The position numbers and the translations under genes were made by a program. A DNA stretch of 64,000 nt from Dendrobates tinctorius (Eukaryota): NCBI RefSeq assembly GCF_039654945.1, contig NW_027361738.1, positions 32,984,001 to 33,048,000 on the forward strand, read 5' to 3'. Shown here piece after piece: positions 13,251 through 41,700 of the stretch. How positions within the stretch are numbered: position 1 is the first letter of the stretch; each line of letters opens with the position of its first letter. The notes below the pieces were generated by a model. That model was given only the letters and a program-made list of their open reading frames with translations, ran no database searches and had not been told where the DNA came from.

Positions 13251-13279
13251 CTGGAAAGACAGACATGTTATGTCACAGG

Positions 13280-14088
13280 TTACTTTTTTGTGGGACAGGT
13301 TATTTTGCTTGGTGCCATTTTGAGGAAAAAGAGAAATATATATTGCACCATTTTTTTGAGACCTGTAGCGCGTCTCCATTTTTTGGGATCTGGAGCTAGG
13401 TCAGGGCTTATCTTTGTGAGCCGAGCTGAAGTTTTTATTAATACCATGTTGGGGTAGATATGACGTTTTGAATGCCCATTATTGCATTTTATTGCAATGT
13501 TGCAGCAAACAAATATAATTATTGCATGTTAATTATTTTTCTCGTTATGCCGCTTACCGATTGGATGAATTTTTTTTATATTTTGAAAGATTGGCCATTT
13601 CTGAACGAAGCGATACCAAATATGTGTATTTTTTATTTGAACTATTTTTTTTCTATCTTTCAAAACACTTTTTTCCCCCTTCACACTTTTTAATGGCTTT
13701 AATAGTCTCCTTAATAGACTTTCAGCTGCAATCTTCTGATCTATGTGTAGCAGAAATGCTTATCTGCAATGAACGCTGGCAACGGGGCTCACAGCAGATT
13801 GGCAATGACAACCACAGTTGTCATGGCAACCCATCAGCACCCCGCGATCATGTGACAAGTGCGTCAATGGACGGGGTTAGTGATGCGCTTCTGGCACGAG
13901 TATGTTAAATGCCGCTGTCAGAGACTGACATTAGCATTTAACATGTTAACATCTGCGGGTGGATCATTATTCCACCAATGGCTGTTAGGGGCACACGAAC
14001 GCTGATCAGATCAGCTATTATGTGCCTGAGCCCGCATTAATGGGGGGAGACACGACATATGATGAACATTTGTCATTAAGGGGGTTAA
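13280..14088. mobile_element. Non-autonomous TTAA-ended (piggyBac-like) repeat fragment
   Basis: Ends AAGGGGGTTAA and shares the TTAAATGCCGCTGTCA hairpin motif with 16242-17329. Confidence 0.5.
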
Positions 14089-14490
14089 GCCTATGAGTTA
14101 AATCATTTCCTTTTTTTAATATCTTGGCTTTTTATGGGTATGGTAAATTTTGAATTGGAAAAACAGGTGTGTTGCACATAAAATGTATGCTTATGCACTC
14201 CCACTCCATCTGCACACAGGACACCGGATCCAGTCTGTGGTTCGGCGGCCGGACACCTACAGATCGTACAATTATTATCCATCCTGTGGATAGCTGGATA
14301 AACATTGTGATTGGAGCAACTGCTTTAAACTTATTTGCGAATTACATTTTCTGGGTTATAAATACACATTCCTTGTACATTATATCTCTCTCAAAAAAAT
14401 TATAATTAAATTGTAATATTACTTATATATATGAACACACAACTCTACACAAATAAAAAGATTACAAATAGAATAGAACCTTGAAATTAC

Positions 14491-14599
14491 CTCTTCACCC
14501 TTTTGTATCCTCCGGTTGGAGCTGATTATTATCTTATGCCCCTTCTCAAATGTCACTACCTCAGCCACACAGTTAGGAGCACATGAATGGTTGATATAC
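14491..14599 (-). CDS. KMT2C: KMT2C exon (SET: RYINHSCAPNC)
   Basis: YINHSCAPNCVAEVVTFEKGHKIIISSNRRIQKGEE; tttcag / gtaatt; phase 2 to 0. Confidence 0.97.
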
Positions 14600-15150
14600 C
14601 TGAAAAAGAAAAAAAAAGCCACAATTGCACTACTACGGTAACAGAGAGAGCACAATATCTTCCCGATGACGTAAGGCCTTAGGGTAGCCCAAGAATGCCA
14701 TTCCCTATGGAGCTGCTGCCATAAAAAGGCGCTGCTATCCTTCCATCATAAGTTTGGCAATTAATTATAGCAGTTATCTAATCAAGATGATGACAGCAGA
14801 GAAACACTACAGGACTCAACCCAATAATAAATATAGGAATGCAGTCCTTTGGTACAAGACTGTGTATTTCAATGTGCAAACCAATCCTGTGCACATAACC
14901 AGCGCTATTATAGTAAGCCAGGGCTATATTTCTTGATTAAGTCCACAATGCACCCATAAAATCTTGCTCTGCATCCTCAGATGTTTTGGTAGTGAACTAG
15001 GCACTTGCAGTACGGTGTTTCAGAAAGAAGAATGCAAGATAATGGAGTATATTATAAAAACTGATAACTTTTCGGTGGTGGTAGTATTCTTGATCAGCCT
15101 TTCCAAAGTTTTTTTTTTTTAAACAAATTTGGAACAAGTTAAATGGCCAA

Positions 15151-15642
15151 GGCCTGTTTCACACATCCGTTTGTCAGCATCAGTCAAGATCCGCCGATTT
15201 GGAAAAAAAACGGATCCGCCATTTTTCTTGGCGGATCCGTTTTGTCCCCCATAGATTTGCATTATCGCCGGATCTTGACGGATGTTCATCCGTTGGATCC
15301 GATATTTTGTGGATCCGCCAAAATGTTGGCGTCCGCTGACAAAACTGGACGGACAATGCAACGTCGGATCCACATTTTTGCTACTCCGGGAGATTTAACC
15401 CTAAATACCGGCCGCAGGAAAAAAAAACCCTCATTTTACCGCGAGATGCCGATCCTCCCCGGATCCCGCTCCCGGATTATTATGTTTTTTTTCAGCACGG
15501 TTCCTTTAAAATTCACATATCGGCGGATCCCCGCGCACCAGCGGTCCGGTAGCGCACGTTGGTGTATTGTCGCCCGCGGATCTGTTCGCCGCCTTTTTGG
15601 CGGCTACCAAATGACAAGGAAAACATAAGTGTGAAACAGGCC
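15151..15642. mobile_element. Harbinger/Tourist-like MITE
   Basis: TIRs GGCCTGTTTCACAC / GTGTGAAACAGGCC, 3-bp flanks CAA/TAA, internal CGGATCCG repeats. Confidence 0.8.
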
Positions 15643-15713
15643 TAAGCAGAGTTGATATAGCGGCCCCTGTTTCCCTTATGAATCTGAGGACTGAAGGCAC
15701 ATTTTGTACCCAC

Positions 15714-15787
15714 CTTGCAGGTCCTCCAGTCAAAGTTGCATCAATCACATGTTCATTATCAATACGAAACATATATACACCACGATT
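15714..15787 (-). CDS. KMT2C: KMT2C exon (SET)
   Basis: NRGVYMFRIDNEHVIDATLTGGPAR; ttccag / gtgggt. Confidence 0.97.
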
Positions 15788-15892
15788 CTGGAATAAAAGT
15801 ATATGAGAAGGACGCACTGTTAGAAGTAGCAAGATGGAAAATACTTTCCATCAGTAACTGAAACAATAGTTAAGTAATCCAGCAGATGGTAC

Positions 15893-16009
15893 CTGTGACT
15901 CGTACAACTTCTCTTTTCTATTGGCTACTTCATTGCGAATTATGGTTCCAATGTATTCAATCACCATAGTGTGCTTTTCAATGTCTCTAGCAGCATATAA
16001 CCCCAGACC
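15893..16009 (-). CDS. KMT2C: KMT2C exon (SET); reading frame not in the ORF track
   Basis: GLGLYAARDIEKHTMVIEYIGTIIRNEVANRKEKLYESQ; ttttag / gtacca; 117 nt. Confidence 0.96.
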
Positions 16010-16241
16010 CTAAAAATGTAAAAAACACTCAGAATAAGATCATAGCACTTATGTACATCTATAACAATTGCGTAATGGGAGACGCCGACAGAAGCACAAA
16101 ACGACGCATCCCTCATACCAGTGTGCTGTACATGCTGCTGTTCGAGATTATAAATATCACAGCAATTGATTGTCAGGAAAGATGGGGGCTTGGCTTGTGA
16201 GCCAGCATCAAAATCAGGGGTGCTTGGAGGTCCACAAGCAT

Positions 16242-17329
16242 TTAAACCCCTTTCCAACTTTGGGCATAATACGCCGATGTTGGACACCCTCCCTTTGATG
16301 TAGGTGTTTTGAACAGCTGGCACGTGCCTCTAATAGCAGCGGGTGGAATTATGATCCACCCGTGGTTAACTCGTTAAATGCCGCTGTCAAACTGACAGCG
16401 GCATTTAACATGCGATTCCGGCAAATGCGCCCAAAATCCGCCCATCGGTGACCCCCATCATGTGATCACGTGTCTCCGATGGGTTGGCATGACAACCAGT
16501 GGTCTCCTGCAGATTGCTATCGCAAGTCTGCTAGATACAGGCAATCTGATCATCGTCTCTATAGCAGAACCGATCGGGTTATAGCAACTTCTAGGCTCTC
16601 ATGAAACATGCCAAAAGTGGAAAAAAAAAAAAAAAAAGTTTTAAAAAAAAATATAAAAGTTCAAATCACCACCCTTTCGCCCCATTCAAAATAAAACAAA
16701 GAAAAAAAAAAATCACACACACATATTTGGTATCACCTGATCTATCAATATAAAAAGAAAAATAACCTGACCGCTAAACGGAGTGACGAGGAAAAAAGTC
16801 AAAACGCCAGAATTACGTTTTTTTTTTTTAAGTCGCCGCAACATTGCATTAAAATGCAATAACAGGTGATCAAAAGACTGTATCTGGACCAAAATGGTAT
16901 CATTAAAAACGTCAGACTGGCACGCAAAGTAACATAGACCAAAGTAAGCCTTCACCCATCCCGAGATCACAAAAAATGGAGACACTACGGGCATCGGAAT
17001 ATGGCACTTTTTTTTTTGCAATTTTTTTTCACCACTTAGATAAAAAAAGAACCTAGACATGTTTCGTGTCTATGAACTCGTAATGACCTGGAGAATCATA
17101 ATGGCAGGTCAGTTTTAGCATTTAGTGAACATAGTAAAAAAGAACAAAAAACAAGTGTGGGATTGCACTTTTTTTTTTTTTACAATTTTACCGCACTTGG
17201 AATTTTTTTCCCGTTTTCTAGTACACGATATGTTAAAACCAATGGTGTCGGTCAAAAGTACAACTCGGCCCGCAAAAAACAAGCCCTCACATGGTCATAT
17301 TGACTGAAAAAATTTAAAATTATGGCTTA
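16242..17329. mobile_element. Non-autonomous piggyBac-like repeat, truncated by a Tc1 insertion
   Basis: Starts TTAAACCCCTTT; motifs shared with 13280-14088 and ~56990-57200. Confidence 0.5.
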
Positions 17330-18176
17330 CAGTTGTGGGAAAAAGTATTTGCCCCCTTCCTGATTTCCTATTCTTTTGCATGTTTGTCACACTTAAATGT
17401 TTCAGATCACCAAACAGATTTTCATATTAGACAAAGATAATATAAGTAAACACAAAATGCAGTTTTTAAATTAAGGTCTTTCTTATTAAGGGAAACAGAA
17501 ATCCAAACCTGTGAAAAAGTGATTGCCCCCAAACCTAACAACTGGTTGGGCCACCCTTCGCAGGAACAACTGCAATCATTAATTTGTGATGACTGGCAAT
17601 AAGTCTTTTACAACGCTCTGGAGGAATATTGGTCCACTCATCTTTGTAGAATTGTAATTCAGCCACAATGGAGGGTTTCCGATCATGAACTACCTTTCTA
17701 AAGGTCATGCCACAGCATCTTAATCTGATTAAGGTCAGGACTTTGACTAGGCCACTCCAAAGTCTTAATTTTGTTTTTTTTTTTTAAGCCATTCAGAGGT
17801 GGACTTGCTGGTGTTTTGGATCATTGTACTGCTGCATAACCCAAGTGTGCTTCCGCCTGAGGTCACAAACAGATGGCCAGAAATTATCCTGTAGGATACT
17901 TTGGTAGAGAGCAGAATTCATGGTTCCATTTAACACAGCAAGTCTTCCAGGCCCTGAAGCAGAAAAATAGTTCCAGACCATCACACAACCCCCACCCATA
18001 TTTTACTGTTGGTATGAATTTTTTTTTATGCAATGGGACAACCACCTTCGAAATCTTTTGTCTTATCAGTTCGTTTGTCTAATGTTAAAATTTGTTTGGT
18101 GATCTGAACACTTAACTGTAACAAACATGCAAAAGAATAGGAAATCAGAAAGGGGGCAAACACTTTCACACAACTG
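17330..18176 (-). mobile_element. Internally deleted Tc1-like transposon
   Basis: TA-CAGTTGTG...CACAACTG-TA with ~100+ bp TIRs; GGGCVMVW..MQQYNDPKH fragment. Confidence 0.85.
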
Positions 18177-18343
18177 TATATCTATGGGCTGTGTCTGGGG
18201 ACTGGTGATAGCTTCAGACCACATTCACCCAACTGTATTTATAAGACACAATCAGGAGAGGAAGAGTCAGAGACAAAGTACAACAGTAACACGAGCAGCA
18301 CTTCTGTACCATGACCCACTTTTGGCTTGTGAAATACACCAAC

Positions 18344-18512
18344 CTGAATTCGAGACCTGGCCAGGTAAACATTGGATTTCCATTCAGTCTTCATCTTCCG
18401 GTACTGAGAGGATTTGGAGTGGACGAACTGCTTGCTGTAGGGTGCGTTCAGTTCCCCAGTAACTGTGCTCTGGAAGGACTTTGAAGTGCTGGTGCTGTTT
18501 AATGTGTGAGGC
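18344..18512 (-). CDS. KMT2C: KMT2C exon (pre-SET and SET start)
   Basis: PHTLNSTSTSKSFQSTVTGELNAPYSKQFVHSKSSQYRKMKTEWKSNVYLARSRIQ; aacag / gttggt. Confidence 0.97.
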
Positions 18513-18755
18513 CTGTTCATGTTCACATCGCAAAAAAAATGAACAGAAAACTGAAGATTACTTGCACCCAAGAAGTTCTCTACAAATATACCCTGAACTA
18601 ATTTAAGCCAAGCTGGCACGGACAACACTGCAGTTGTTAAGGGTACAAACGTATACAGCCAAAGACAATTAGGTTCGTAAGCAACACACAGGAGCACAGA
18701 GCAGCACAGTTGCTGTAAACCCTCGGCTGTACAATGTGAATTGAAAGGAAAATAC

Positions 18756-18898
18756 CTTAACACAAACCTCTTGACATGATTGCTCATTTTGGGCTCAGAG
18801 CGGGCACAGCCTGAGGGATTGATGGCCAGAGGGAGCTGCATCAGAGGATTCCGGCCATAACGGAAAGTGTAACTCTCACAGGCTTCCACTCCAGGTAG
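18756..18898 (-). CDS. KMT2C: KMT2C exon (WIN motif GCARSE)
   Basis: LPGVEACESYTFRYGRNPLMQLPLAINPSGCARSEPKMSNHVKRFVLR; gctcag / gtattt. Confidence 0.97.
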
Positions 18899-19130
18899 CT
18901 GAGCAATGAATGGATAACAATAAGCCCACCACATAACATTAACATATACAACAATTAAAATGCCATTGTGAAAAATGTTAAAATGTTTATTACTCAAATA
19001 AATGCTGACAATGGCTATTTAATAATAAACACAAACAAAAAGCCTTTCTGCAGTTTCAGTCAGTGTTGGTTGTGTCTATATGACCCCATGAGTGCAATAT
19101 AACATAACGCCAAGTACTTTCTGCTCTTAC

Positions 19131-19267
19131 CGATTCTGCTATTCTTGAAACAGCTGAAACTGTTAAACCAAAAAGATCTTCCCCCTTCAGGTACACCGGG
19201 AAGAGCCTGAGAATTTCTGAACCCTTCCGACAGTTTGCAACAGGCTCCAAGATTTTGTCCCAAACAC
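19131..19267 (-). CDS. KMT2C: KMT2C exon (FYRC)
   Basis: GVWDKILEPV..LKGEDLFGLTVSAVSRIAES; cttag / gtaaga. Confidence 0.97.
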
Positions 19268-19401
19268 CTAAGAAAAACAACATATTGTCAACAATTAAGG
19301 CAAGGTTAAAAGATGTCTCCAAAATAATTGAGACAAGAACCCCCCCCCCTCCCCCACGACCCTACTCCATTTAGGAGACACCCGTTCAGCGACTTAACGT
19401 A

Positions 19402-20961
19402 TAGTCATGGCCAAAAGTTGAGAATGACACAAATATTATATTTTCTCATGATCTGCTGCCCTCTGGTTTTTATGTGTGTTTGTCAGATGTTTTCATCACA
19501 TACAGAAATATAATTGCAATCATATTATGAGTAACAAAAGGTTATATTGACAGTTAGAATGAGTTAATGCAGCAAGTCAATATTTGCAGTGTTGACCCTT
19601 CTTCTTCAGGACCTCAGCAATTCTCCCTGGCATGCTCTCAATCAACTTCTGGATCAAATCCTGACTGATAGGAGTCCATTCTTGCAAAATCAATGCTTTT
19701 ATTTTGTCTGAATTTGAAGGTTTTTGTTTGTCCACCCGTCTCTTGATGATTGACCACAAGTTCTCAATGGGATTAAGATCTGGGGAGTTTCCAGGTCATG
19801 GTCCCAAAATCTCTATGTTTTGTTCCCTGAGCCATTTAGTTATCACCTTTGCTTTATGGCAAGGTGCTCCATCATGTTGAAAAAGGCATTGTTGATCGCC
19901 AAACTGCTCTTGGACGGTTGGGAGAAGTTGCTCTTGGAGGACATTCTGGTACCATTCTTTATTCATGGCTGTGTTTTTAGGCAAGACTGAGAGAGAGCCC
20001 ATTCCCTTGGCTGAGAAGCAACCCCACACATGAATGGTTTCAGGATGCTTGACAGTTGGCATGAGACAAGACTGGTGGTAGCGCTCACCTGGTCTTCTCC
20101 GAATAAGCCGTTTTCCAGATGTCCCAAATAATCGAAAAGGGGATTCATCAGAGAAAATGACTTTACCCCAGTCCTCAGCAGTCCACTCCCTGTACCTCTT
20201 GCAGAATATCAGTCTGTCCATGATGTTTTTTCTGGAGAGAAGTGGCTTCTTTGCTACCCTCCTTGAGACCAGGCCTTGCTCCAAGAGTCTCCGCCTCTCA
20301 GTGCGTGCAGATGCACTCACACCTGCCTGCTGCCATTCCTGAGCAAGCTCTGCACTGCTGGTAGCCCGATCCGCAGCTGAAATACTTTTAAGAGACGGTC
20401 CTGGCGCTTGCTGGTCTTTCTTGGTCGCCCTGGAGCCTTTTTGGCAACAAGGGAACCTCTCTCCTTGAAGTTCTTGATGATGCGATAGATTGTTGACTGA
20501 GGTGCAATCTTTCTAGCTGCGATACTCTTCCCTGTTAGGCCATTTTTGTGCAGTGCAATGATGACTGCACGTGTTTCTTTAGAGATAACCATGGTTAACA
20601 GAAGAGAAACAATGATGCCAAGCACCAGCCTCCTTTTAAAGTGTCCAGTGGTGTCATTCTTGCTTAATCATGACAGATTGATCTCCAGCCCTGTCCTCAT
20701 CAACACCCACACCTGTGTTAATGGAGCAATCACTGAAACGATGTTAGCTGGTCCTTTTAAGGCAGGGCTGCAATGATGTTGAAATGTGTTTTGGGGGATA
20801 AAGTTAATTTTCTAGGCAAATATTGACTTTGCAAGTAATTGCTGTTAAGCTGATCACTCTTTATAACATTCTGGAGTATATGCAAATTGCCATTAGAAAA
20901 AATGAAGCAGTAGACTTTGCAAAAATATTTGTGTCATTCTCAAAACTTTTGGCCATGACTG
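19402..20961 (-). mobile_element. Full-length Tc1 transposon; transposase broken by two frameshifts
   Basis: TIRs (C/T)AGTCATGGCCAAAAG with TA flanks. ORFs 20317..20625 (HTH, GRPRK), 19796..20320 (FSDES, FQHDGAPCH) and 19577..19759. Confidence 0.95.
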
Positions 20962-21002
20962 TATTCAGCACCATGAGAGGAAGAAAGAAAATGACAATCC
21001 AA

Positions 21003-21646
21003 AGCTGGAGTCACACATAGCGACTTACCAGCGATTCTGACACCGATATCAAGGTGTAAGGATCGCTGGTAAGTTATGTGATTGCTGGTGAGCTGTCACA
21101 CAGACAGCTTCACCAGCGATTAGCACAGCGATGCCGAGCGCCCGGCATCGCTTGCCATCCCTGTAAAAAATAGAATTAAAATAAAAAAATATTGTTATTC
21201 TTACCTTCCGACGTCCCGCGCAGCCATCCTGCCTCTCTCCACGCTCCGGTCCCAGTAATCCTTTGCGAGAATGACCACGAGACATCACGGTCTCGCGGGA
21301 GCGCCAAGTCTCGCGGTCATTCGTGCAAAGGATCACTGGGACCGGAGCGTGGAGAGAGGAATGTTGCGCGGGACGTCTGAAGGTGAGAATAACAATATTT
21401 TTTATTTTAATTCTATTTTTTACAGCTGATCGCTTGTCTCCCGCAGCGATGCGTGCTGGCCAGCGGGAGACCAGCGACCAAAAAAATGTCCAGAGGTTTC
21501 TTACAGCGATCAGCGATACCGGCAGGGGGGCCACTCGCTGATCACCGTCACACACAGCGATCTCGCTGGGGAGATCGCTGTTACGTCACAAAAGTTGTGA
21601 CTCGGCAGCGATATCGCTAGCGAGATTGCTATGTGTGACTCTCGCT
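21003..21646. mobile_element. Harbinger-like palindromic MITE
   Basis: GAGTCACACATAGC ... GCTATGTGTGACTC termini; CAGCGATC-rich inverted internal arms. Confidence 0.7.
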
Positions 21647-21900
21647 TAAGTTTTCAACCCAAGTTTTTTTTTTTTATGACTAAAGCAATCCTCCACCTGG
21701 GACTGAAAATTGACCATTAATTTTATACATAATGACTCTCCAGGGTGCCAGTGTCACTTTTCAGTGGCTTTAATACCATTGGTGTTTTTATAATACTTTA
21801 GCTATGAGGCCATTAATTAGGTCTAGTGGCTTCTGCTCGACCCTGCAGCTCATCACCAAGTGAGCTGGCCTGCTCCCGGTTACCCCATCAAACCACTTAA

Positions 21901-22410
21901 AGGGAATTTGTCAATAGGATCAACCCTCCTAAGCAGTCTATGTGGGCATGTAGGTAATAGGAAGCTGAATAAAATGATACCTTGATATCTGTGATCCGAC
22001 GTTTTTTTTCAGAGAGATCTACATTTTTCACAATATGTTAATGAACTGTTAAAATCTATGGGCTGGACACGGATCTCACCGAGAATGGCTCCTGAACTTA
22101 TTTTAAATGACAGGTGGCATTACCAGTGTGAGGCAGTAGATCAGAAGAGCAGACTGTCAGTCATTACATACCACAATGGTAATGTCCCCTTTAATTTAAA
22201 ATAAGCTCTGGAGGCAGATTCTCAGGGAGATCTGTGTCCGGCCCATAGATCTTAACAGTTCATTAACATATTAAAAAAAAAAAATGTGGATATCATCACT
22301 GGAATAAGATATCAGATCACATATATAAAGGTATAATTTTATTCAGCTTCCTATGACCTATATGCCCATGCAGACCACTTAGGAGGGTTGATACTAGTGA
22401 CAGATTCCCT
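21901..22410. mobile_element. T2/Kolobok-type MITE
   Basis: TTAA-AGGGAATTTGTCA ... TGACAGATTCCCT-TTAA; long imperfect palindrome. Confidence 0.85.
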
Positions 22411-22571
22411 TTAAGTACTGCAATCCCTACTGACACACAGAGAAAAATAACTAAGGCGGCTAAAAAGGCAATAAATTTATGAAAAGTAACTGACAAAGTG
22501 GCAGAAAAAAAGCAAATTTACACAAGGAAGTTGGAACATTAGATTTGTTAAATTCTCCCTATTGTGCCCAC

Positions 22572-23694
22572 CTTTTGGTGTATTATCTGTCAGGACCTGG
22601 TCTTCGTATCCTTGTTCATGGACTCTGATGACAAATAAGGGCAATCCATCTTGCTCCTCGATGGAGCAGAGGTACCGGCAGCGCCTGTTGGGGTACCGCA
22701 TACTCCAGTATAACCTGCTGGCTTCAAAGCCTACCGGGAAAAGAGCCGTCGCAGAGTGAAAGTCCTGCATTTGCTGTGGTAGCAACTGACCAATTGCATG
22801 GAAGATCAAGCTGCCAACACGGAAAGTGTGGTCGCGTTCCCCACGTTGCACTATGCTGGCTATCTGCCGCACCTCATCACGCTGAACGTAAACTCTACGA
22901 AAGACTGCAAAGTAAGTCAGTTCTTGCTCATGAGCTCCCTTTGGCTTGTGCATGGGGCAAAGCATAGTTTTGTCTTTAAAAAACATGCATTGTGCTTTTA
23001 TTGCACAGGTGAAGTGATAGATATTGGTGCACCGTAACCTGTGGCAGCCACTTGTGGCTCCCGTTTTATGACAAAAGACACACTTCATCTGCAGTCCGCG
23101 TCTCAAAGCAAGTTCAACATTAATTAAGGCACCAGCCTGTGTCTCATAGACTTCGGTAGACCAAAGTGCACAGTTTAAATGGACCCAGAGGTCAAGGTCA
23201 AGGTTGAGCAGCCTTGCAGGCCCATCCGTCATTCCATCACCTTCTTCATGGCAGAAACAACATTTTCTAAAATCTTTGGGCAGAGGATCTGGCTTTAGAG
23301 ACGTTCCCAGTCTTTTCAAAAATTCATCTATGTCATCCTCGCATTGAGGTTTAAAAGGCATCTTGGGAATAACAATTTGAATATTCCATTTCTTCCACTT
23401 CATCCCTTTCCACCGCTTGCCGAAAGGCCGAGAATCATCCAGACCACAATGCAACATTCTCGGCCGAGGTTTTAACTTCACCGTGACTTTCAGCTCATCA
23501 GGCTTTGCCTCAACCTTAGCAGTTTCAAAAGCAGCGGGTGGAAATGAAATCGGAGGAGACGACGGTGGTGAAAACTTGTCCTGCAGCAACGGAAGGCAAT
23601 GAACGTCCAGGGTAGAAGTGTTGTTACTGTACTGATGACATGACTTTGGTTGCGTTTCCTTTACAGATGGAGATGTTAAGGAACAATCCGGGGG
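22572..23694 (-). CDS. KMT2C: KMT2C large exon (extended PHD, FYRN, start of FYRC)
   Basis: RKCCFCHEEGDG..WVHLNCALWSTEVYE..FRVGSLIFH..GFEASRLYWS; ttttag / gtgggc; 1123 nt, phase 0 to 1. Confidence 0.98.
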
Positions 23695-24040: not shown

Positions 24041-24271
24041 AGAATCTAATCTGCTTTCCAAACATGGAACCTTATATACATCCCACTCCCATCAGGGTAA
24101 TTATAAACATACGTGAGAGACTTAAAAACATGTGCTTTAAAAGCAGATCAAACATATAAACTATCCACATATTGATCAGTATACAACATGCATAAAGATT
24201 ATAAGGAAAGAATTCAACATATTGGAGAAAAGTACATTGGGAATGTCCAATAACCTGACCATAAGATTTAA

Positions 24272-24665
24272 GGCCCTGTGCACACAGTGCAGACTCCGTG
24301 CAGTTCCGCAGCAGATTTGGCCCTGCAGAACCGCAGCAGAAAAGCAACAGAACAGCACGTGATGCACAGTACCATTTAAGGCTATGTAAAACAAAAAAGG
24401 CTGTGCACATGCTGCAGATTTTTCCGCGCAGATCTGGTGCAGAATAAAAGCAGCAGCATATCGCTTCTCCTGTGCGGCTCTGCTGCAGCTCTCCACCTGC
24501 TCCATTATAGAAATCTGCAGGCGGAAACTGCAAGGGGAATCCGCACAAAAACTGCACCAAATCTGCGACAAATCTGCAGGCAAAACGCAGATCATCTTAC
24601 CTAAAGATTTAGCAAAATCTACGCGGAAAATTCCACAGCAGAATCCGCACCGTGTGCACATAGCC
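24272..24665. mobile_element. Harbinger-like MITE inside the Penelope 3' region
   Basis: GGCCCTGTGCACAC ... GTGTGCACATAGCC. Confidence 0.75.
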
Positions 24666-26629
24666 CCAGTGGTACAAAAACATAGAATAATAATATTAAC
24701 CAGCATTATATAATACAAATATATCAATAGTGCATAATGATATCCAGGCGGTTATTAAAGCCCTGTGGCATGCGAGTCTCCAACTCAAATATCCACCTAC
24801 TCTCTCTTGCAAGCACTTTATGAAAATCTCCCCCTCTCAATGTTTTTTTTACATGCTCTATGCCCATAAAGGAGAAACCGCGTAAATCCCCATTATGTTT
24901 TTTTGAAAAATGTCGGGATACTACTGATGCACCAACCATAGGCAAATTACTAGCGTCTGATAGGTGTTTGCGGATTCTAGTTTTAAGGGGGTTCATCGTG
25001 AAACCTACATATTGCATACGGCATATATTGCAATTAATTAGATACACTACATTCTCCGTATTACAGTTTATAAAAGAACAAACATTAAACTGTTTTTTAT
25101 TGGAGATAGATGTAAATGTTTTAGATTTATTAGCAAAACCGCAGCACTTACAGATATTGGCACCGCATTTAAAAAATCCTGTTGTTTTTAACCAATTGCT
25201 AGGGGAAATTTTATCCAGATCTTTGAACATGCTGGGTGATAATAGTGTAGCTAAAGTCGGGGCTCTTCTTGCCACAAAGGCAATATCATTATTTTCCACA
25301 ATATTTTTCAAAATATCATTCTGAGATAACAAGGGAAGATATTTTTTGATGATTTTAACAATAGAATTAAACTGAGGACTATAATTGGTACTGAAAACCA
25401 CCCTAGATTTTTTAGAGTCAAACTGTCTTTTTTTCTCAGTAGATTCCAACAGCTTAACCCTATCCATGCCTGCTACCATTTTCCTGGCTCTGTCCAAGGA
25501 CCAATTAGGATACCCCCTTTTTTTAAATTATTACAGGTCATTTCAATTCCTTCCTCCAATTTGTCACTAGATGTAGTATTCCTTTTTAGTCTAATAAGCT
25601 CCCCCACAGGAATATTCTAAATGACATGTTTGGGGTGATTAGAGGAAGCCATTAAAATACTATTGCATGCAATGGATTTTTTATAGGGAGATATCAGAAC
25701 CCCATCATTGTCCAGATCTGCGGTCAGTTTCAAATCCAAGAAGTTAATTGATACCTCATGACCACTACTAGTAAATTTTAGATTGAAATCATTCAAATCC
25801 AAATAAGAAAAGAAACTTTTTGCAGGCGAGAGACTACCCCTCCAGAGAAATATCAGATCATCAATAAATCTCCCCAGCCAAACAATATTATCCTTGTATG
25901 GGTTATCAATGTTAAAGATATAATTTTCTTCCCACAGACATAACCAGGTTAGCTAGGGAGGGTGAAAACTTGGCACCCATGCTCACACCCTGTGTCTGGA
26001 GGAAATATCTCTCATCAAACACAAAATAGTTGTGGCTTAAAAGAAATTGAATTGAGGAGACAATAAACCTCTGAATGGAATCCTCATAATTACTGTATCT
26101 GGACAAATAATATGTGATGCATCGTAACGCGACGTGATGGGGGATAGAAGGATATAACCCCACCACATCGCAAGATAACCACACATAATCAGATTGCCAA
26201 TGAAATTTTTCCATAATCTGTATTATACTTTTGGAATCTTTAAGATGACTTGGTGATAATGGCACTAAAGGTTGAAGATAAAAATCAACCCACTCCCCTA
26301 GTTTCTCACTAAATGATCCGATCCCAGACACTATAGGTCTGAGATGGGGAGGAAAAACCTCTTTATGAACTTTAGGGAGTGAGTGGTATATTGGGACAAT
26401 CGGTGTTTCACAAAAAATAAATTTTTTAATTCTGTCTGAAATAGCACCCATACTAATTCCCACCTGTAATAGATGTAATAATTCAGAGTTAAATGAATCA
26501 GTTGGATTAGATGGCAATTCAATATAGGTGCTACTGTTTTCTAAATCCAGCAAGTTCATTTTCTTATATAAACCAGCATTGAGAGCCACAATAGCGCCCC
26601 CCTTGTCTGCCTGGACACCAAGGAGATCG

Positions 26630-26630
<1 letters not shown>

Positions 26631-26679
<49 letters not shown>
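26631..26679. repeat. (TA)n microsatellite
   Basis: Pure TA run of ~24 units. Confidence 0.98.
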
Positions 26680-26682
<3 letters not shown>

Positions 26683-27555
26683 ACAAGTCAGTGGAAGTCG
26701 CATGCCGGGCGATGGGGTGTGGACCAGGCTCAGCTCCCGCTATGCAGCCTGTAGCTGTAGCCGTTCTTATTTTTCAGACACTTCTTGTTTCATTTAATGT
26801 TGTGGGGGAGTCAATCATAAAGTTTGTATGTACCCTAAAATAGTGCGAGGTAAAAAAAAAAAAAAAGCTATAGTTCGCCCAGCAAAATGGTGAGCACTTT
26901 TACAGCTCTACTGATGAAAGAATATAATTAAAATATAATGTAGGGGATAAGATTTTTGGGACACAGATGTCCCCCCCCCCCCATCACACGTAAAACAAAA
27001 ATAAAAAAATTTACACACACTTTAAGCCTCTGTATTTGTTAACTTAGGACGGCTACTTCATTACCAATGGCCTTAATCTACTGTATAAAGGATATAAAAA
27101 AAAGAGAACCGGTCAGTAAAGATGGATTTTTGGTTCTTACCGTAAAATCTCTTTCTTGGAGCCTTCATTGGGGGACACAGAATACCATGGGTGTATGCTG
27201 CTGCTGCTAGGAGGCTGACACTATGCAAAACAAGAAAATTAGCTCCTCCCCGGCAGTATACACCCACCGACAGGCACTAGGCACCTGAGTTGGTGAGAAA
27301 GCAGTAGGAGAAGCAACAGAAACTCTCTAAACATATGTACCAACCCAACAGGGGACTCAAAGACCCAACACAGTACAATTTAAACAGGGAGGGTGCTGTG
27401 TCCCCCAATGAAGGCTCCAAGAAAGAGATTTTACGGTAAGAACCAAAAATCCATCTTTCTTTATCGCCTTATTGGGGGACACAGAATACCATGGGACGTT
27501 CCAAAGCAGTCCCAAGGGCGGGAACAGCAATAAGGAACGAAAGAACAGGAAAGGC

Positions 27556-28600
27556 TTAGGTCGGCCGGTGCGCCACCGCCGCCTGCAGAACCTTCCTACC
27601 AACAACTGCATCAGACGAGGCCTGGGTATGAACCCTGTAGAACCTCGCAAATGTGTGCAAGGATGACCAGGTCGCGGCCCTGCAAAGTTGCAGAGCCGAA
27701 GCCTGGTGTCGAACGGCCCACAAAGCTGCCACAGCCCGGGTGGAGTGAGCCCTCACTCCCGGAGGGGGCCGTCTTTCCTGAAGTCTGTATGCTTCCTGAA
27801 TGGTAGAACAAATCCAGCGAGCGATCGTGGATTTGGATGCCGGAAGCCCTTTCCTGTGACCTTCAGAGATGACCAGCAATGAATCGGATTGACGAAGTGA
27901 AGCGGTCCTAGCGAGGTAGACACGCAAGGCTCTAACAACATCCAGCTTGTGGAGTGACCTCTCAAGAGGGTGAGAAGGAGCTGGACAAAACGATGGAAGA
28001 ACGATATCCTCGTTGATGTGAAAGGAGGAAACCACCTTTGGCAGGAAGGAAGGAACGGGCCTGAGGACGACTTTATCCTGATGGAGCACCAGATAAGGAG
28101 AACGACATGACAAGGCCGCTAACTCAAACTCTTCTGATGGATGTAATGGCGATCAAAAAGGTCACCTTCCATGACAGAAGTGACAAAGGAATGTCCTGGA
28201 TGGGTTCAAACGGCGCCTTTTGGAGAGCGCCAAGAACGAGATTGAGATCCCACGGTTCTATTGGTGAATGATTAGGAGGAGCCACATGAGCGACTCCTTG
28301 GAGGAACGTCTTAACCTGCGGTAAGGAAGCGAGCTCTCTTTGAAAGAGGATAGACAAGGCAGAAACCTGGCCCTTCAGGGTGCTGAGAGACAGACCCGAA
28401 TCTAAGCCAGACTGGAGAAAACCCAGTATGGACGGAATGGAAAAGGCCATTGGAAAAACTTTATCGTCGCACCAACGGAAAAAAGCCTTCCAACACCTGT
28501 GGTAAATGCGGGAAGAGGCTGGCTTCCTGGCTTTGATCATCGTCTGAATCACCTGGTTGGAAAAACCTGATTCTCTTAGGATTGCGGCCTCAACGGCCAT
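27556..28600 (-). pseudogene. DIRS-B tyrosine recombinase domain (ORF3), frameshift at ~28120
   Basis: AITSIRRV (R), RAHSTRA (HxxR), ATWSS (W), FARFY (Y). Confidence 0.9.
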
Positions 28601-30478
28601 GCCGTTAAATTCAGAGACCGAGAATTCTCGTGGTAAAGGGGGCCTTGCGAGAGAAGATCCGGACGGACTGGAAGTCTCCAGGGAACGTCCGCGAGCATGT
28701 TCACCAGTTCCGCATACCAAGGCCGTCTCGGCCAGTCTGGAGCCACAAGAATTACTGGAACGCCTTCCGATTTTATCTTCTTGACCACTCTTGGGATCAA
28801 GGCAAGAGGTGGAAAAAGATAAGGGAGTTGGAACTGGGACCACGGAATTACTAGGGCGTCGCAAGCGACGGCTAGAGGGTCCCTGGACCTGGCTACGAAG
28901 CGCGGAACTTTGTGGTTCATCCGAGATGCCATGAGGTCGACGTCCGGAGAACCCCAGCGCTTGCATATCTGATCGAAGACTGAGGGATGGAGAGACCATT
29001 CGCCTGACGCTAGGCCTTGACGACTCAAAGTCGGCTGCCCAGTTTTCCACCCCTGGAATGTGAACGGCGGAGATTGCTGGGACGTAACGTTCCGCCCAGC
29101 GCAGAATCCTGGCCACTTCTGACATGACTTGGTGGCTGCGCGTGCCGCCCTGATGGTTTATGTACGCCACAGCCGTGGCGTTGTCCGACTGAATGCGGAT
29201 CGGCTTGCCGACGAGAAGGGGTTGCCAGCGAAGAAGGGCCAGAAAGATTGCTCTGATCTCGAGCAGATTGATAGGAAGAAGAGCTTCCTGAGGGTTCCAG
29301 TGTCCTTGAGCCGTCCTCTGATGAAAAACCGCTCCCCAACCCAGGAGGCTGGCATCGGTGGTGATGACTTGCCACCGAAGCGGGAGGAAGGACCTCCCAT
29401 GGAGGACTGATGAAGACATCGTCCACCAAGTGAGGGATTGCCTCACTTTGAGAGGGAGAAGAATTGGCCGGTCTAAGGACCTCGTCGTCTTGTCCCAGGC
29501 TGAAAGGAGGGACAGCTGAAGAGGACGAAGGTGAAACTGTGCAAAGGGCACTGCTTCCAAGGAAGCTACCATCTTCCCCAGAACTTTCATGCAGAATCGA
29601 AGGGGAATGGGCGTCGGCCGTTTGAGGGCTCGAATCCCTTTGAACAGAGCCGCAAATTTTTCCCTCGGAAGAAACACCCTGGCCAGGTTCGTGTCGAACT
29701 CCATGCCTAAAAAGGTCAGACGCTGAGTGGGGCTGAGGACGGACTTTTCTTTGTTGACTAACCATCCGAGACGGTCGAGAGTATCCAGGGTTATCTGAAC
29801 ACTTAGGAGACAGTCTTGACGGGACGAGCCCTTGATTAAGAGATCGTCCAGATAAGGAATGATGAGAATCCCTCTGGATCGAAGGATGGCCATGACCGTC
29901 GCCATCACTTTCGTGAAAACACGGGGAGCGGAGGCTAGGCCGAAAGGGAGAGCCGTGAACTGGTAATGATCGTCCTGAATCGCAAACCTGAGATATTTCT
30001 GATGCTGCAAGCAAACAGGGATGTGAAGATAGGCATCCCGTATGTCCACAGAACAGAGAAATTCTCCAGGCTTCATTGAGGCTATCACCGATCGAAGAGA
30101 CTCCATTTTGAAGTGAAGAATCTTCACGTGGCGATTGAGCAACTTGAGGTCCAGGATTGGCCGCAGGGAACCGTCTTTCTTCGGGACTACGAAGAGATTT
30201 GAGTAGAACCCTGAAAACTGTTCGTCTGAGGGAACGGGAACAATCACTCCGGCGGAAAGAAGGGAGGAGACGGCCTGAAAGAATCCTGGAATGTGGGACC
30301 GTTGTCTTGGAGGACGAGACAGGAGAAAACGCCTGTCTGGCGGGAAGAAAATTCGATCTTGTAACCGGATGCGATTAGTTCCCTGACCCAAGCGTCGTCG
30401 ACAACCGACAGCCAAGCGTCCACGAAAAAGGAAAGTCTGCCTCCCACCCTGGAAAAACTTCCAGGTGGGGGTGCCCCG
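28576..30478 (-). pseudogene. DIRS-B ORF2: reverse transcriptase, RNase H and methyltransferase-like domain; frameshift at ~29025
   Basis: FYSNLFVVPKKDG..RPILDL..LPFGL..YLDD; TTDASLLGWG..INLLE..SDN; DLMAS..YLFPP..APDWPRRPWY. Start approximate. Confidence 0.9.
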
Positions 30479-31960
30479 TCACTTGGAGGCAAACCTACCG
30501 GAACGGGCACCTGAGGACCTGGAGTATTGTCCTCTAGATCTCCAGCGGGGAGCGGGCTTGTAAGAAGGTTTCTTCTGCTCTCGCTCCCTAGATGCGGAAG
30601 GACGCTCTTGCTGGACAGATCTCTCTGTGGACGAGAACGGACGAAAAGGCCTAAAGGGCCGAAAACCCTTTCTATTAAAAATACGTCTTGGTCGAGACTG
30701 GGGGAGAGAAGTACTTTTGCCCCCAGTGGCGTCAGAAATTATTTGATCCAGCTTGGCCCCAAAGAGCCTAGAACCATGGAAGGGCAGATTGGTGAGCGAC
30801 TTTTTTGAGGTGGTATCCGCATTCCATGACTTTAACAAAAGAACTCGGCGGACAGCTACTATATTGCTGTTAGCCCTAGCAACGCAACCGGCCGCATCTA
30901 AGGAGGCGGCTAAAAGGTATTTACCCACGTGATTAATTTGATCTGCTAGATCTGCCAGCTCGTCCTGGGGAGCTGCCGCTAAGATGCCCCTGCGAAGAAT
31001 TTTTGCCCAAGCCAAAATGACTTTAGCTACCCAGGAGGAGGCGAAAATAGGGCAGAGGGAGGCACCGGAGGCCTCAAAGATAGATTTCGCCAAAGATTCT
31101 AACTGCCTGTCTGTCGGATCCTTAAGCGATGCACCGTCTGGAAGGGACAGAACTGTCTTAGAGGCTATGCGAGAAACGGGAGGGTCCACTTCAGGGGCTT
31201 TGGTCCATTTAGAAAGCAAATCAGCCTCAAATGGGTACAGAACATCCAAATACCTGCGGCCCGAAAAGCGTTGCTCAGGGTGCTCCCAATGTTTGGCTAG
31301 AGTAGTATCAAACTCGTTGTGGTTTGGAAAAGTTTTAGATGGAGGTCTTGAACGTTTAAATGGAACAGAACATTCCTGAGGAAGGGGCTTGTCCTGCTTA
31401 ATCTCCAGGGTTTGGAAAATAGCTGAAAGAAGACTATCGACCATACTTCGTGTTTTAGACATGTCATCTGCTTCTGAACTAGATCCTGATTGTGGATCGT
31501 CGTCTGACCTAAGGTCGTCCACTGAAGGAGACGGACACCTGGGTGACGCAGACGGGCCTAGCGAACTGGAAGACGAGCCCGATAGGAGACGCTTCCTGGA
31601 CATCCTATTCGGCCTGTCCCTCTGAAGGTCGCGGTCAGGAGCGGACGACTCACCCTGAGAGGCGGTCGGAGCAGCGGTGGCTGAAGATAGCTGAGGCAAA
31701 CGTTCTAGGACCTGGACCAGGGACTGAGAGACTTTGGTCAGATCGGATACCGACTGAGACATAGCTACGGCCCATTCTGGGAGAGGAGAAGTGCCCCCAT
31801 CACGGGAATCTGTGTGCTCCTGAGAGGCCGACATAGCTGAAGGACTGCAGGACGGGCAGAAAGGAGATGGCTGACCCGAAGCCCACTTCCTTTTACAGCG
31901 CGCACAGGCGTAATGAGTAGCGGTGGGCCTGAAACAGAGCTCCCCTGCAGGGTTGGGCAT
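30479..31960 (-). CDS. DIRS-B ORF1 (gag-like; N-terminal CxxC..CxxC, LAP2alpha-like C-terminal domain), intact
   Basis: 493-aa open frame: CARC..CPSC, PEVDPPVSR, LKDPTDRQLE, Arg-rich tail. Confidence 0.88.
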   Translation of the reverse strand: MPNPAGELCFRPTATHYACARCKRKWASGQPSPFCPSCSPSAMSASQEHTDSRDGGTSPLPEWAVAMSQSVSDLTKVSQSLVQVLERLPQLSSATAAPTASQGESSAPDRDLQRDRPNRMSRKRLLSGSSSSSLGPSASPRCPSPSVDDLRSDDDPQSGSSSEADDMSKTRSMVDSLLSAIFQTLEIKQDKPLPQECSVPFKRSRPPSKTFPNHNEFDTTLAKHWEHPEQRFSGRRYLDVLYPFEADLLSKWTKAPEVDPPVSRIASKTVLSLPDGASLKDPTDRQLESLAKSIFEASGASLCPIFASSWVAKVILAWAKILRRGILAAAPQDELADLADQINHVGKYLLAASLDAAGCVARANSNIVAVRRVLLLKSWNADTTSKKSLTNLPFHGSRLFGAKLDQIISDATGGKSTSLPQSRPRRIFNRKGFRPFRPFRPFSSTERSVQQERPSASREREQKKPSYKPAPRWRSRGQYSRSSGARSGRFASK

Positions 31961-32907
31961 AAGGAAAACTGCGCTGAATGGCCGCGGAAATTGGGGAAAG
32001 AACTGCGGAGGAGGGCTAATGTCTCTGCATAGAGCAGAGCCTACCTAGTTCCGGCGAGCAGCAGAAACGCTGAAGTGTCCCCCAAGCAGCGCAGAAAGGC
32101 AGGACCGAAGAAACAGGAAATGCCTGATGAGGTGAGCGGTGGGCGGAGCTTAGCGGCTGAGCCGCAATTGGAGCTGGCATGAAGGAAGGGAACGAGGAGC
32201 CCTGTGATGGGCTATTCAAATAGCCTGGTGATGTCCAGTTACCCACCAATGTGCCTCTTGGGGATGCTGCGGGCTGGAGGGATCGTTCAGGCACCTACCT
32301 GACGTCCCTGAAGAGGATGACCACAGGGACCTCTCACAAGGGTAGTGGCAAGTCGCTGGCCTCTGTACCCGCGTTCTGCAGAAGACGGCATTAACCTCTT
32401 GATGGCGAGGGGAATCTTGCGATCGCCGTCTTCCTCTCAGCCCTGTCCCGAGAGAGGGGTGAGGAGGGGGATTTTGGCAAGGACCAGCCACCTGTCCACA
32501 TCCCATAGCACCCAGAGGTGATATGGGAAAAAGTCCTGCCAGCGCACTGAGAGTTGCGATGTGGGATCACCACACTGCTCGCTCAGCCGCCTGATATGGG
32601 AAAGCAGAGTGAACTTTCACCCTGTTTCCCGACTTGAATCTGCAAAACAAAAGACAAGAGAATTAAAAAGTTCCACTAGAACACCTAAGGAAAGAAAAGG
32701 TTAATTGCGGATCTGGGAAGATCCCGGTCCACCTCCTACAGACACTAAGCACAAACTGAGGTGCCTAGTGCCTGTCGGTGGGTGTATACTGCCGGGGAGG
32801 AGCTAATTTTCTTGTTTTGCATAGTGTCAGCCTCCTAGCAGCAGCAGCATACACCCATGGTATTCTGTGTCCCCCAATAAGGCGATAAAGAAAATCAGCT
32901 GCCTAAA

Positions 32908-33285
32908 GGCCCCTTTACATTTAGCGATGCACCAGCGATCCGACCACGATACGACCTGGTCAGGATCGCTGGTGCATCGTTAAATGGTCGCTAGTGAGCT
33001 GCCTAACAGGCAGATCTCACAGCGATGTAGCGACGCAGCAGCGGTCGTTACTTACCTTTCAGACGCAGTGATGACTTCCTCCCGCCCGTGTCCACACGTC
33101 GGCGCCAGCAGGAAGCGCCCGACGAGAAATGGAGCCGGCTGATCTCGCGCGATCAGCGACAGACAGTGTGGGAGCCGGTCGGAGGTATCACACATAGCGA
33201 TATCGCTAGCAATATCGCTGCTGCGTCACAAAATCGGTGACACTTTAGCGATATTGCTAGCGATATCGCTATGTGTAAAGGCCCC
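32908..33285. mobile_element. Harbinger-like MITE
   Basis: GGCCCCTTTACAT ... GTGTAAAGGCCCC; same CAGCGATC family as 21003. Confidence 0.7.
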
Positions 33286-38754: not shown

Positions 38755-41700
38755 GCTGTTTTCACACTAGGCGTTTTATCATGCAAATTTTCAGCAGCAT
38801 TTTACGTACTGTAAAACACAGCTTAAAATTTGCATTATAAAAACACTGAAAAAAAAAGCAAAGTCTGAGATTTCTGGTTTTTTTTTTGCGCGTTGCATGT
38901 TTTTTTAGCACAACAGAGCTTGTCACTTTCAGCATTTTTCACTCCCAAATAATAATAATGGGTGGTGAAAAACGCTGAAAATTCACACCAAAAAATGCAG
39001 GTATCAGGAAAAAATGCAGCAACAAAAGCACCAAACATGCAGCAAATTTTTTGCTGCAGCTTCTTTCCTGCAGAAAAAATTTTTTTTGTGTACTCACCGT
39101 AAAATCTCTCTCTTAGCCGTTGGGGGACACAGAACCGTGGGTGTTATGCTGCTGTCCACTAGGAGGCGACACTATGCATAATCTGAAAAAGATTAACTAT
39201 GGCTCCTCCTCTGCAGTATACTCCCCTGGACTGCGTCAGCCTTCTCCAGTTTTGTGCAAAAGCATTAGGAGGAACGTAACAGAGAATAACATAACCATGC
39301 CTGTAAGAAGGCTACTATGCACGAGCTCAAAAAACAATATGAGAACTCAACCGTAAACAACGGCCCGTAAGGGCAACAGGGTGGGAGCTGTGTCCCCCAA
39401 TTAGAGGCTAAGAGAAAGAGATTTTAGGGTGAGTACACAAAAATCTCCTTTACTCTGTCGCCTCATTGGGGGACACAGAACCTTGGGACGTCCTAAAGCA
39501 GTCCATGGGTGGGAAGCAATGGACGAATATTGTGCTAGCGGTAATCCTAAACATGGGGCACTGCCGCCTGCAGAACCCGTCTACCCAGGCTCGCATCCGC
39601 TGAGGACTGAGTATGAACACTGTAGTGTTTCGCAAACGTGTGTAGGCTAGTCCAAGTGGCCGCTTTGCACACTTGTTGTGCTGAAGCCTGGTGCCAAATG
39701 GCCCAGGAGGTCCCTACTGCCCGTGTAGAATGTGCCGTGATACCTGCCGGAAGAGGAGACTTGTTAAGGCAGTAAGCCTCATGTATGGTGGACTTGATCC
39801 ACCTGGCAAGGGTAGCCTTGGAAGCCGGCAGGCCATTGTGACCGCCTTCCGGAAGAAAGAAGAGGGAATCAGACTTCCGGAAGGGTGCAGTCCTGGACAA
39901 GTAAATCCGCAATGCTCTGACGAGGTCAAGCGTATGCAGAGCCTTCTCCACTCTATGAACCAGAACCGGACAAAGGGATGGCAGTGAGATTTCCTCATTG
40001 AGGTGAAAGGTGGACACAACCTTCGGAAGGAAGGATGGTACAGTACGGAGAACCACCTTGTCCTGGTGAAAAACTAGGAAAGGCCGTCTGCAGGAAAGTG
40101 CTGACAATTCAGACACTCTGCGTAGCGAGGTGATTGCCACTAGAAAAACCACTTTCTGTGACAGAATGCAGAGTGGGACTTCTTTAAGGGGTTCGAAGGG
40201 TGGTGCCTGCAATGCTGTCAGGACCAGGTTGAGGTCCCACGTTTCCAGTGGACGTTTGTAGGGGGGAACCAATCGGGAAACTCCATGGAGGAAAGTCCTT
40301 AGTTGCGGTTTGGTAGCAATGCGCCTTTGAAAAAGGACTGAAAGCGCTGACACCTGACTCTTAAGCGAGCCTAGGGATAGCTTGGCGTCTAGGCCCGATT
40401 GAAGGAAACCTAGTACCTTCGGGAGGGAATAAGGGAGTGGGACTTGTCCGTGAGATTCACACCAGGAAAAGAAAGCTCTCCAGGTACAATAATAAATCTT
40501 GGCGGAGGCTGGCTTCCTTGCCCTGATCATGGTCGCAATGACATCTGGTGAAAACCCTGCCTGGTTAGAATCCAGGTTTCAAGGGCCATGCCGTCAAATT
40601 GAGAGCCCCTGAATTCTAATGGTAGAACGGACCTTGAGACAGAAGGTCGTGACGGTCAGGGAGACGCCAGGGGTGTCTGCTGTAAGTTGAACGATGTCGG
40701 CGTACCATGTACGTCTGGGCCAATCTGGCGCGATGAGGATGGTTGGAACTCCCTCTTGTTTGATCTTCCTCACGACCCTGGGGATCAGGGGGAGGGGTGG
40801 AAAAATGTACAGTAGTTGGAACTGGGACCAGTCCATCCGCTCCGAGCGACCGCGGGTCGTGTGTCCTGGCCATGAAATTGGAGACCTTGGCATTGATATG
40901 GGATGCCATTAGGTCCACATCCGGGGATCCCCAGCATTGACAGATCTGGTAAAAAAATCTCGGGATAGAGAGACCACTCCCCCGAGTCCATTCCTTGCCT
41001 GCTGAGGAAGTCGGCTTCCCAGTTTTCTACACCCGGAATGTGGACCGCAGAGAGTACCGACCTCGTGTCTTCCGCCCAGTGGAGGATATGTGCCACTTCT
41101 CTCATCGCCTGGGCGCTGCAGGTCCCGCCTTGGTGATTCACATATGCCACAGCCGTGGCATTGTCCGACTGTATCCGTATGTGCGAGGCTGCAAGCAAGT
41201 GATGAAAGGCTCTCAGTGCCAGGAAGATGGCCCGGATTTCCAGGATATTGATGGGCAAGGTCGCTTCCCTTGGTGACCACTTGCCTTGTGCCCTGTGATG
41301 TCGGTGCACCGCCCCCCAACCTGTCAGGCTTGCATCGGTGGTCAGGACCTTCCATTGACCTGAGAGAAAAAGGGTTTTCCTCGTGCAAGCGAAGTTGGCT
41401 TGAGCCACCAATGCAGGGACCTCCTGGTTGACGAAGTCAACCGGAACTCCCTGTCGAGGGAGAACGGATTCCTGTCTCAAGATCTGAGGATGGCTAGTTG
41501 AAGAGGCCTGAGGTGAAACTGGGCAAATGGCACTGCCTCTATTGCTTCTGCCATCCTGCCGAGGACTCTCATGGCAAACCGGAGAGATCGGGGAGGACTG
41601 CGGAGGAGTGTGCGAACTCCCAGACGGATGGCTAGTGTCTTGTCCTTGGGAAGGAACACCAGACCTCTGGAGGTGTCGAATAACATTCCCAGGAAGGTTA

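Follow-up and report, generated by a model that had tools for sequence, protein, structure and literature searches.

DIRS-type elements in the KMT2C region

The region considered here is a 64,000 nt window of the Dendrobates tinctorius genome (contig NW_027361738.1; positions below are counted from its first letter) that includes part of gene KMT2C on the minus strand, and our subject is a splice-donor-like motif that lies just inside the 3′ end of the DIRS-type retrotransposons in it. Self-comparison finds five such copies in the window, all on the minus strand and so in the sense orientation relative to KMT2C. Copy B (27118–32893; 5,776 bp) lies in a KMT2C intron and was delimited by self-comparison, its termini, its internal complementary region (ICR) and Pfam matches. 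A0 (1–2907), found by self-comparison, consists of a 5′ part only, and family A is represented by A1 (about 39075–45167, also from self-comparison), the internally deleted A2 (50812–53220, with its 3′ end at 50812) and A3, which runs from its 3′ end at 60254 to beyond the window end at 64000.

All copy B features named here lie on the minus strand. Its gag-like open reading frame (ORF; 30479–31960) matches the Pfam LAP2alpha family (DIRS gag-like), and the next ORF (28124–30415) encodes reverse transcriptase (RT) together with RNase H (Pfam RVT_1, 1e-21, and RT_RNaseH). The tyrosine-recombinase (YR) part (27556–28113) has an HSTR motif and a C-terminal Tyr region; its Pfam Phage_integrase match is at E 0.038 only, under the cut-off, and relatives carry PF00589 (P0065). 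The pol-YR frame is broken near 28113–28126, and other copies of the family differ at the same place. There are 1,596 protein relatives at E ≤ 1e-20, mostly anuran, and the best of them are from Dendropsophus, Dendrobates and Ranitomeya.

DIRS1-like elements have inverted terminal repeats (ITRs), an ICR whose halves overlap on a trinucleotide, and a 26–48 nt right extension (rE) that is complementary to the right ICR half only (PMC3266345); their termini are NTT (TTT in Xenopus; PMC9210276), and there is no target-site duplication. In copy B the conserved part of the 3′ ITR (27167–27291) is an inverted copy of 32754–32878 (125 bp, 99.2% identical). The ICR (27396–27495) has two halves that are complementary to the two termini; the right half (about 27396–27458, ∼63 nt) is complementary to the 3′ terminus at 27118–27180, and the left half (27456–27495) is complementary at 40 of 40 positions to the 5′ terminus at 32854–32893. 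On the opposite strand the ICR reads as the 3′ end followed by the 5′ end, the two joined across a common TTT, so the original prediction, which was made from the letters of the window, was right that both outer segments of the element are copied in the ICR; they are present there in inverted form. The 3′-terminal 33 nt that the prediction had flagged (27118–27150) lie past the ITR, end in TTT and are complementary to the right ICR half only; this segment is the rE of the DIRS literature (term and definition in PMC3266345). The window elements match exactly the DIRS1-like rE and ICR anatomy of PMC3266345 and the Cappello model as presented in PMC7192593. With its RT/RNase H, gag-like and YR parts, ITRs, ICR and rE, copy B is a DIRS1-like retrotransposon.

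A donor motif near the 3′ end and in the ICR

The sequence ACG|GTRAGW (the bar marks the putative cut) is present in four of four visible 3′ termini and is mirrored in all four ICRs. In copy B it reads TTTTACGGTAAGA in the rE (27135–27147, minus strand), with its ICR mirror at 27429–27441 on the plus strand, and in the A1 rE it reads TTTTACGGTGAGT (39092–39104, minus strand; plus-strand mirror at 39422–39434). The corresponding minus-strand sites are TTTTACGGTGAGA in A2 (50829–50841; plus-strand mirror at 51161–51173) and TTTTACAGTGAGT, which has A at −1, in A3 (60271–60283; plus-strand mirror at 60603–60615). Each element therefore carries the motif in sense in its rE and in antisense in its ICR, ∼290–330 bp apart. 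Every letter of the donor consensus strings that had been claimed for these four termini is present where it was placed. The measured distance from the GT to the terminal TTT is 23 nt (∼20 nt had been predicted), and position +3 is a purine across the families, as expected if the family difference there reflects the degeneracy that U1 tolerates.

Splice sites were scored with hand-entered 5′ and 3′ splice-site weight matrices, and U1 duplex energies were computed. The copy B donor scores 8.7 (rank 4 of 320) and has a U1 duplex energy of −8.2 kcal/mol; the donor-like 9-mer itself, ACG|GTAAGA, occupies 27135–27143 on the minus strand, which places the putative cut between 27141 and 27140. Across the whole window the motif is found 11 times against an expectation of 4.4, and none of 100 shuffles reached 11. 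The copy B motif lies at the midpoint of the ICR palindrome, and the ICR spans both sides of the putative cut.

The motif in other DIRS1-like elements

DIRS1-like loci of other species were fetched through their RT proteins, and their termini were set from the ITR/ICR inverted repeats. The rE contains ACG|GTGAGT in Dendropsophus, Xenopus laevis and the lizard Hemicordylus, ACG|GTAAGT in one further frog contig, AAG|GTAAGA in the caecilian Rhinatrema, and AAG|GTGAGT in the turtle Macrochelys, whose ICR copy is GTAAGT. Hyperolius has the weaker CAG|GTAACT, the sole mismatch at +5, but with a full exon-side CAG. A donor-like site lies 15–28 nt from the 3′ end in nine of nine tetrapod copies, and in all nine it ranks between first and ninth among 130–390 sense-strand GT sites by weight matrix and U1 duplex energy (P = 0.002–0.074 per 45–50 nt window). 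The tetrapod elements have U1 duplex energies of −8 to −12 kcal/mol, and the metagenome clades described below −11 to −14. When the sites are aligned on their GT, no variation is seen at G−1, G+1, T+2 and A+4, position +3 holds either A or G, and seven of eight have G at +5; information content is highest from −1 to +7, and the flanks are near random except for an upstream purine tract. The nucleotides gained upstream of the motif read AA or CA.

Metagenome contigs scanned with an RT alignment gave 80 loci, 15 of which have an ICR and a 3′ terminus. A well-supported RT clade with ATT termini (clade I) carries a perfect CAG|GTAAGT in seven copies, 24–27 nt from the end, and this site ranks first of ∼225–250 GT sites in six copies and second of 227 in L095; one member of the clade is without it. 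A second, oyster-type clade that includes Pinctada has CAG|GTAAGT/C, TTG|GTAAGT or TGG|GTAAGT 32–53 nt from the end, and there the motif sits not in the rE but inside the block common to the ITRs and the ICR. This ITR position, against the rE position elsewhere, suggests more than simple inheritance. It may be noted separately that in four oyster-type elements (L013, L024, L049 and L057) the ITR motif also faces outward, in antisense, at the 5′ end, making the two donors that lead out of these elements (exit donors, as discussed below) symmetric.

Paths in the RT tree between motif-bearing lineages exceed two changes per site; the motif is therefore old and kept by selection. Comparison of all these elements argues that it is a selectively kept U1-type donor consensus (MAG|GTRAGT), old in animal DIRS1-like elements, and not a quirk of one family. 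Its recurrence near DIRS 3′ ends hints that the host splicing machinery is used there.

A putative U1-type exit donor

The reading that we favour, and to which we give roughly even weight, is that the motif acts as a conserved U1-type exit donor on an element that has no poly(A) signal near its 3′ end. Neither AATAAA nor ATTAAA is present in the last 700 nt of nine of 12 elements, and sense transcripts without these signals would run on toward the flank. U1 small nuclear ribonucleoprotein could then bind the exit donor 15–28 nt before the end of the element, and the element RNA might be spliced to a downstream acceptor, be cut at the donor, or have its 3′ processing controlled there. The ∼20 nt tail past the donor would be dispensable in the RNA and could be restored using the ICR, where the tail and about 40 nt upstream of the cut are both copied. 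For copy B the downstream acceptor would be that of the KMT2C exon starting at 23580. This exon (22477–23580, minus strand; acceptor ...TTGCTGCAG|GAC) is the next one downstream and encodes the ePHD and FYRN domains (Pfam FYRN and zf-HC5HC2H on ORF 22477–23589); if the copy B donor is used in a read-through transcript, it would be the natural partner.

Several features point to a U1 role. The conserved letters are exactly those of the optimal U1 complement, including a CAG whose structural role varies, the tolerated variation tracks the degeneracy of 5′ splice sites, the spacing to the end is variable, and the motif has two structural positions in the elements. A candidate intron at the other end of copy B would be another contact with the spliceosome. 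This 354 nt segment (31945–32298, minus strand; donor CAG|GTAGGT, acceptor ...CCCTGCAG|G) lies 5′ in gag; its removal would put gag in frame with an ATG further upstream, at element position 388, and such an intron is plausible. Strong donor-like sites also lie 220–700 nt from the 5′ end in most other families.

Several observations weigh against an exit donor. The fish-type clade has the donor in none of its six elements (from Labeo, Cirrhinus and Mugilogobius, and three metagenome copies), and the motif is therefore neither universal nor essential to DIRS replication; the GTRAG conservation by which the original prediction was to be judged holds in most tetrapod, clade I and oyster-type elements and fails here. 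Poly(A) hexamers are equally absent near the 3′ ends of these donor-less fish elements, so there is no complementary pattern of donor and poly(A) signal. In the predicted fold of the 3′ 400 nt, the 3′ terminus pairs with the ICR over ∼62 bp (−184.5 kcal/mol, z −13), and this helix would bury the donor and may mask it. In many lineages there is overlap between the motif and a terminal hairpin or palindrome, an alternative cause of constraint that is taken up below. Nonsense-mediated decay could act on a chimeric spliced RNA, whose benefit to the element is unclear, and the tolerance of five sense copies in one gene speaks against efficient use of their donors.

The search at the RNA level, in which no run on record as RNA came up, weighs neither for nor against use of the donor. 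Four runs (X1, X2, X15 and X16) were examined over 27000–32999 as short repeat-family contigs whose origin from RNA is unproven; their depth profiles are similar over this interval, and among the joints and loose ends listed from them neither a joint at 27141 nor a back-splice is present. The loose ends that fall at 27136 and 27440 were considered as splice junctions and rejected, as they are subfamily variants of the rE tail. Logan contigs with frog DIRS ORFs (L007–L011) are uninformative about the 3′ end since they break at the ITR and ICR repeats, and RefSeq host-gene "isoforms" with a DIRS RT (P0003, P0015, P0104 and P0112) have a coding part without host domains and cannot show which donor is used. 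In Xenopus tropicalis and X. laevis, DIRS families are known to be transcribed.

Alternative explanations of the motif

The strongest alternative, a possible one that we hold to be appreciably less probable than the exit donor, is that the element's own machinery reads a small terminal hairpin or palindrome in which the motif forms the apical loop or 3′ arm, the likeness of the motif to a donor being coincidental. The hairpin or palindrome would then lie at the centre of a palindromic circle junction and be used, for example, in RT priming or by YR acting on folded single-stranded cDNA; the midpoint position of the motif in the copy B ICR palindrome agrees with this. The terminal 45 nt fold more than shuffled sequences (Fisher 3e-6 over 21 elements, which are not independent), a predicted local alternative fold puts the donor in a loop or 3′ arm, and the outer stems vary in sequence between lineages yet keep their pairing. 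Where tetrapods have the donor, teleost elements have palindromes of the type GGTTAC-N4/5-GTAACC, and clean palindromes lie at this place in fish, goby and oyster (L003 about 9845–9873, L015 about 12650–12680, L014 about 9390–9419 and L013 about 9505–9539; e.g., GGTTAC-GTAC-GTAACC and GGTTAA-TTTC-TTAACC). A GTAAC(C) arm that overlaps the motif is kept in turtle, lizard and Hyperolius, and in the turtle and the lizard GTAACC follows directly after GTGA. A 3′ hairpin was also proposed by Poulter and Goodwin as a possible primer for Dictyostelium DIRS-1, as cited in PMC7192593; the reported hairpin of DIRS-1 is at positions 4792–4805. On the other hand, a hairpin leaves unexplained why the letters form an optimal U1 complement (9/9 in the CAG|GTAAGT of clade I, including a CAG with a family-dependent structural role), and why some clades have the motif in the rE and another has it in the ITR. 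Unlike that of a rigid protein site, its distance from the upstream arm and from the terminus is variable (15–28 nt), and most frog and caecilian families show little dyad symmetry.

That the ICR copy is the one that matters, in antisense, is quite unlikely. The inverted 3′ ITR would in that case be an inward promoter, the ICR donor within ∼100–250 nt of it a promoter-proximal U1 site, and the rE copy merely templated by the ICR. Antisense transcription from the right repeat is known in Dictyostelium DIRS-1, the donor is present twice per element, once per strand, and in most tetrapod elements the ICR copy ranks first or second among antisense donor-like sites. Nothing in the window indicates an antisense promoter, however, and the ITR position of the oyster-type motif leads to sense donor copies in the 3′ ITR and the left ICR half; nor does this reading explain the conservation of CAG any better than the sense reading does.

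The original prediction went further and proposed that DIRS elements are built like giant exons, with an acceptor and a donor that lie ∼30 nt in from the 5′ end and ∼20 nt in from the 3′ end, respectively, so that sense copies would be spliced or back-spliced out of host pre-mRNA as linear or circular intermediates. We consider this highly improbable. Its donor half is real, the five copies are all sense to KMT2C, the ITRs would bring both ends together, and a good pyrimidine tract and CAG lie near the 5′ end in a few families (Hyperolius, X. laevis and L040/L064). The symmetry fails at the 5′ end. Two termini do have the letters that were described, a pyrimidine tract reaching CAG, and the 5′-terminal 29 nt of copy B (32865–32893, minus strand) end in CACAG. 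As a 3′ splice site this CACAG| ranks 278 of 377 in copy B and 289 of 439 in the other window family (P about 0.95), which is at chance in both; the AG is preceded there by a run of five Gs. Across 15 metagenome elements the 5′-terminal AG has P values of 0.08–0.91, none below 0.08 (L040 is at 0.08), and among tetrapod copies P is below 0.08 in two of nine only, with Hyperolius and X. laevis looking good; the AG is thus no better than chance in most families. A branch point for it could only be placed within the first few bases or in flanking host sequence, and the TATA-like box of the element is downstream of the candidate AG. No joints that go back were seen in the contigs of unproven RNA origin, and a back-spliced circle would give a cDNA without the free ends that the ICR splint model appears to need, to judge from the Cappello model as it is given in PMC7192593.

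Two further ideas were rejected: capture of a U1 small nuclear RNA, since the ICR resembles U1 over the donor complement only, and a mini-exon from the 3′ ITR made of a 3′ splice site and the terminal donor, which is marginal (Fisher combination ∼0.05 with a crude matrix). Several tetrapod families do have a good pyrimidine tract and AG 100–320 nt before the terminal donor, ranking first to eighth in five; in copy B it is at 27221–27224 (minus strand), about 103 nt from the 3′ end, and there are equivalents in A1/A2, L001, L002, L006 and L012. An Rfam search of the window found no ribozyme or other RNA family.

Genomic surroundings of the elements

Directly downstream of copy B, in the same orientation and before the next KMT2C exon, is a Penelope-like element (24072–26703, minus strand) with GIY-YIG and RT ORFs. 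The flank upstream of copy B (32900–32999) is highly repeated and self-complementary, with a contig depth of 4,000–23,000 compared with 10–700 inside the element. Farther on, at 54384–55878, is a GC-rich block (63% GC) in which both GC and AT skew are strong; it contains repeats, tandem as well as inverted, and each strand has long ORFs. A 486-amino-acid ORF (58129–59589, minus strand) has no Pfam match, and its nearest atlas clusters, at weak scores, are Q/P-rich coactivators (BCL9, NCOA6 and MAML); this ORF is probably a KMT2C exon that encodes disordered sequence, in which case B, A1 and A2 would share one intron.

Among intragenic copies from other genomes, three of four are in the sense orientation (L001, L002 and L006) and L004 is antisense; these were found through gene calls, a possible source of bias. 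A sense bias is unusual for intronic retroelements.

Relation to known systems and significance

The element and its rE are known; no splice-donor or U1 motif in a DIRS rE is described in the accessible literature, two key reviews being outside the search. Retroelements and other units that carry comparable signals are known. The HIV-1 major splice donor lies in the SL2 hairpin (CUG|GUGAGUAC), and U1 silences the poly(A) site of the 5′ long terminal repeat. As predicted for DIRS elements, the donor is displayed in a small hairpin of a retroelement RNA, and in HIV-1 its binding by U1 governs nearby 3′-end processing as well as splicing. The HIV-1 donor, however, is in the 5′ leader and has proven acceptors, whereas the motif in DIRS elements lies at their extreme 3′ end without an internal acceptor and is known from sequence alone. 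Further parallels are gene-trap vectors of the poly(A)-trap type and the papillomavirus U1 site of the late 3′ untranslated region: a transcription unit that lacks a poly(A) signal of its own has a donor at its end, or its terminal region contains a U1 site by which polyadenylation is governed; these are engineered or viral and experimentally proven, whereas the DIRS role is argued from the letters of the elements. Maize Ds and Mu-type transposons are spliced from host transcripts through terminal splice sites and have functional splice signals at their ends, but there the element acts as an intron with its donor at the upstream end, the opposite polarity to the DIRS donor at the downstream end.

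In fission yeast the 3′ end of telomerase RNA TER1 is made by spliceosomal cleavage, the first step of splicing only. The likeness, by analogy only, is that an RNA that works with a reverse transcriptase would have its 3′ end set by a 5′ splice site; a branch point and 3′ splice site lie downstream in TER1 itself, whereas a DIRS copy would rely on the host flank. An extension of the exit-donor reading along these lines, rather unlikely in our view, is that animal DIRS1-like elements set the 3′ end of their genomic RNA through the host spliceosome at the exit donor, either by splicing onto host exons or by first-step cleavage, and that the ICR is there partly to rebuild the tail so removed.

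No primer for DIRS reverse transcription is known according to PMC7192593. The formation of the DIRS RNA 3′ end, the priming of RT and the need for an ICR are all unsettled questions, and the motif offers a concrete handle on them that can be mutated. It is a consensus U1 site, just inside the 3′ end, that tetrapod and invertebrate-type lineages have retained over hundreds of millions of years, and even if it is part of a hairpin it would still mark the functional centre of the circle junction. For annotation, intronic DIRS copies in the sense orientation carry some of the strongest donor-like sites of their region and are candidates for chimeric or exonised transcripts. If the exit donor is real, it would tie a whole order of retrotransposons to the splicing machinery.
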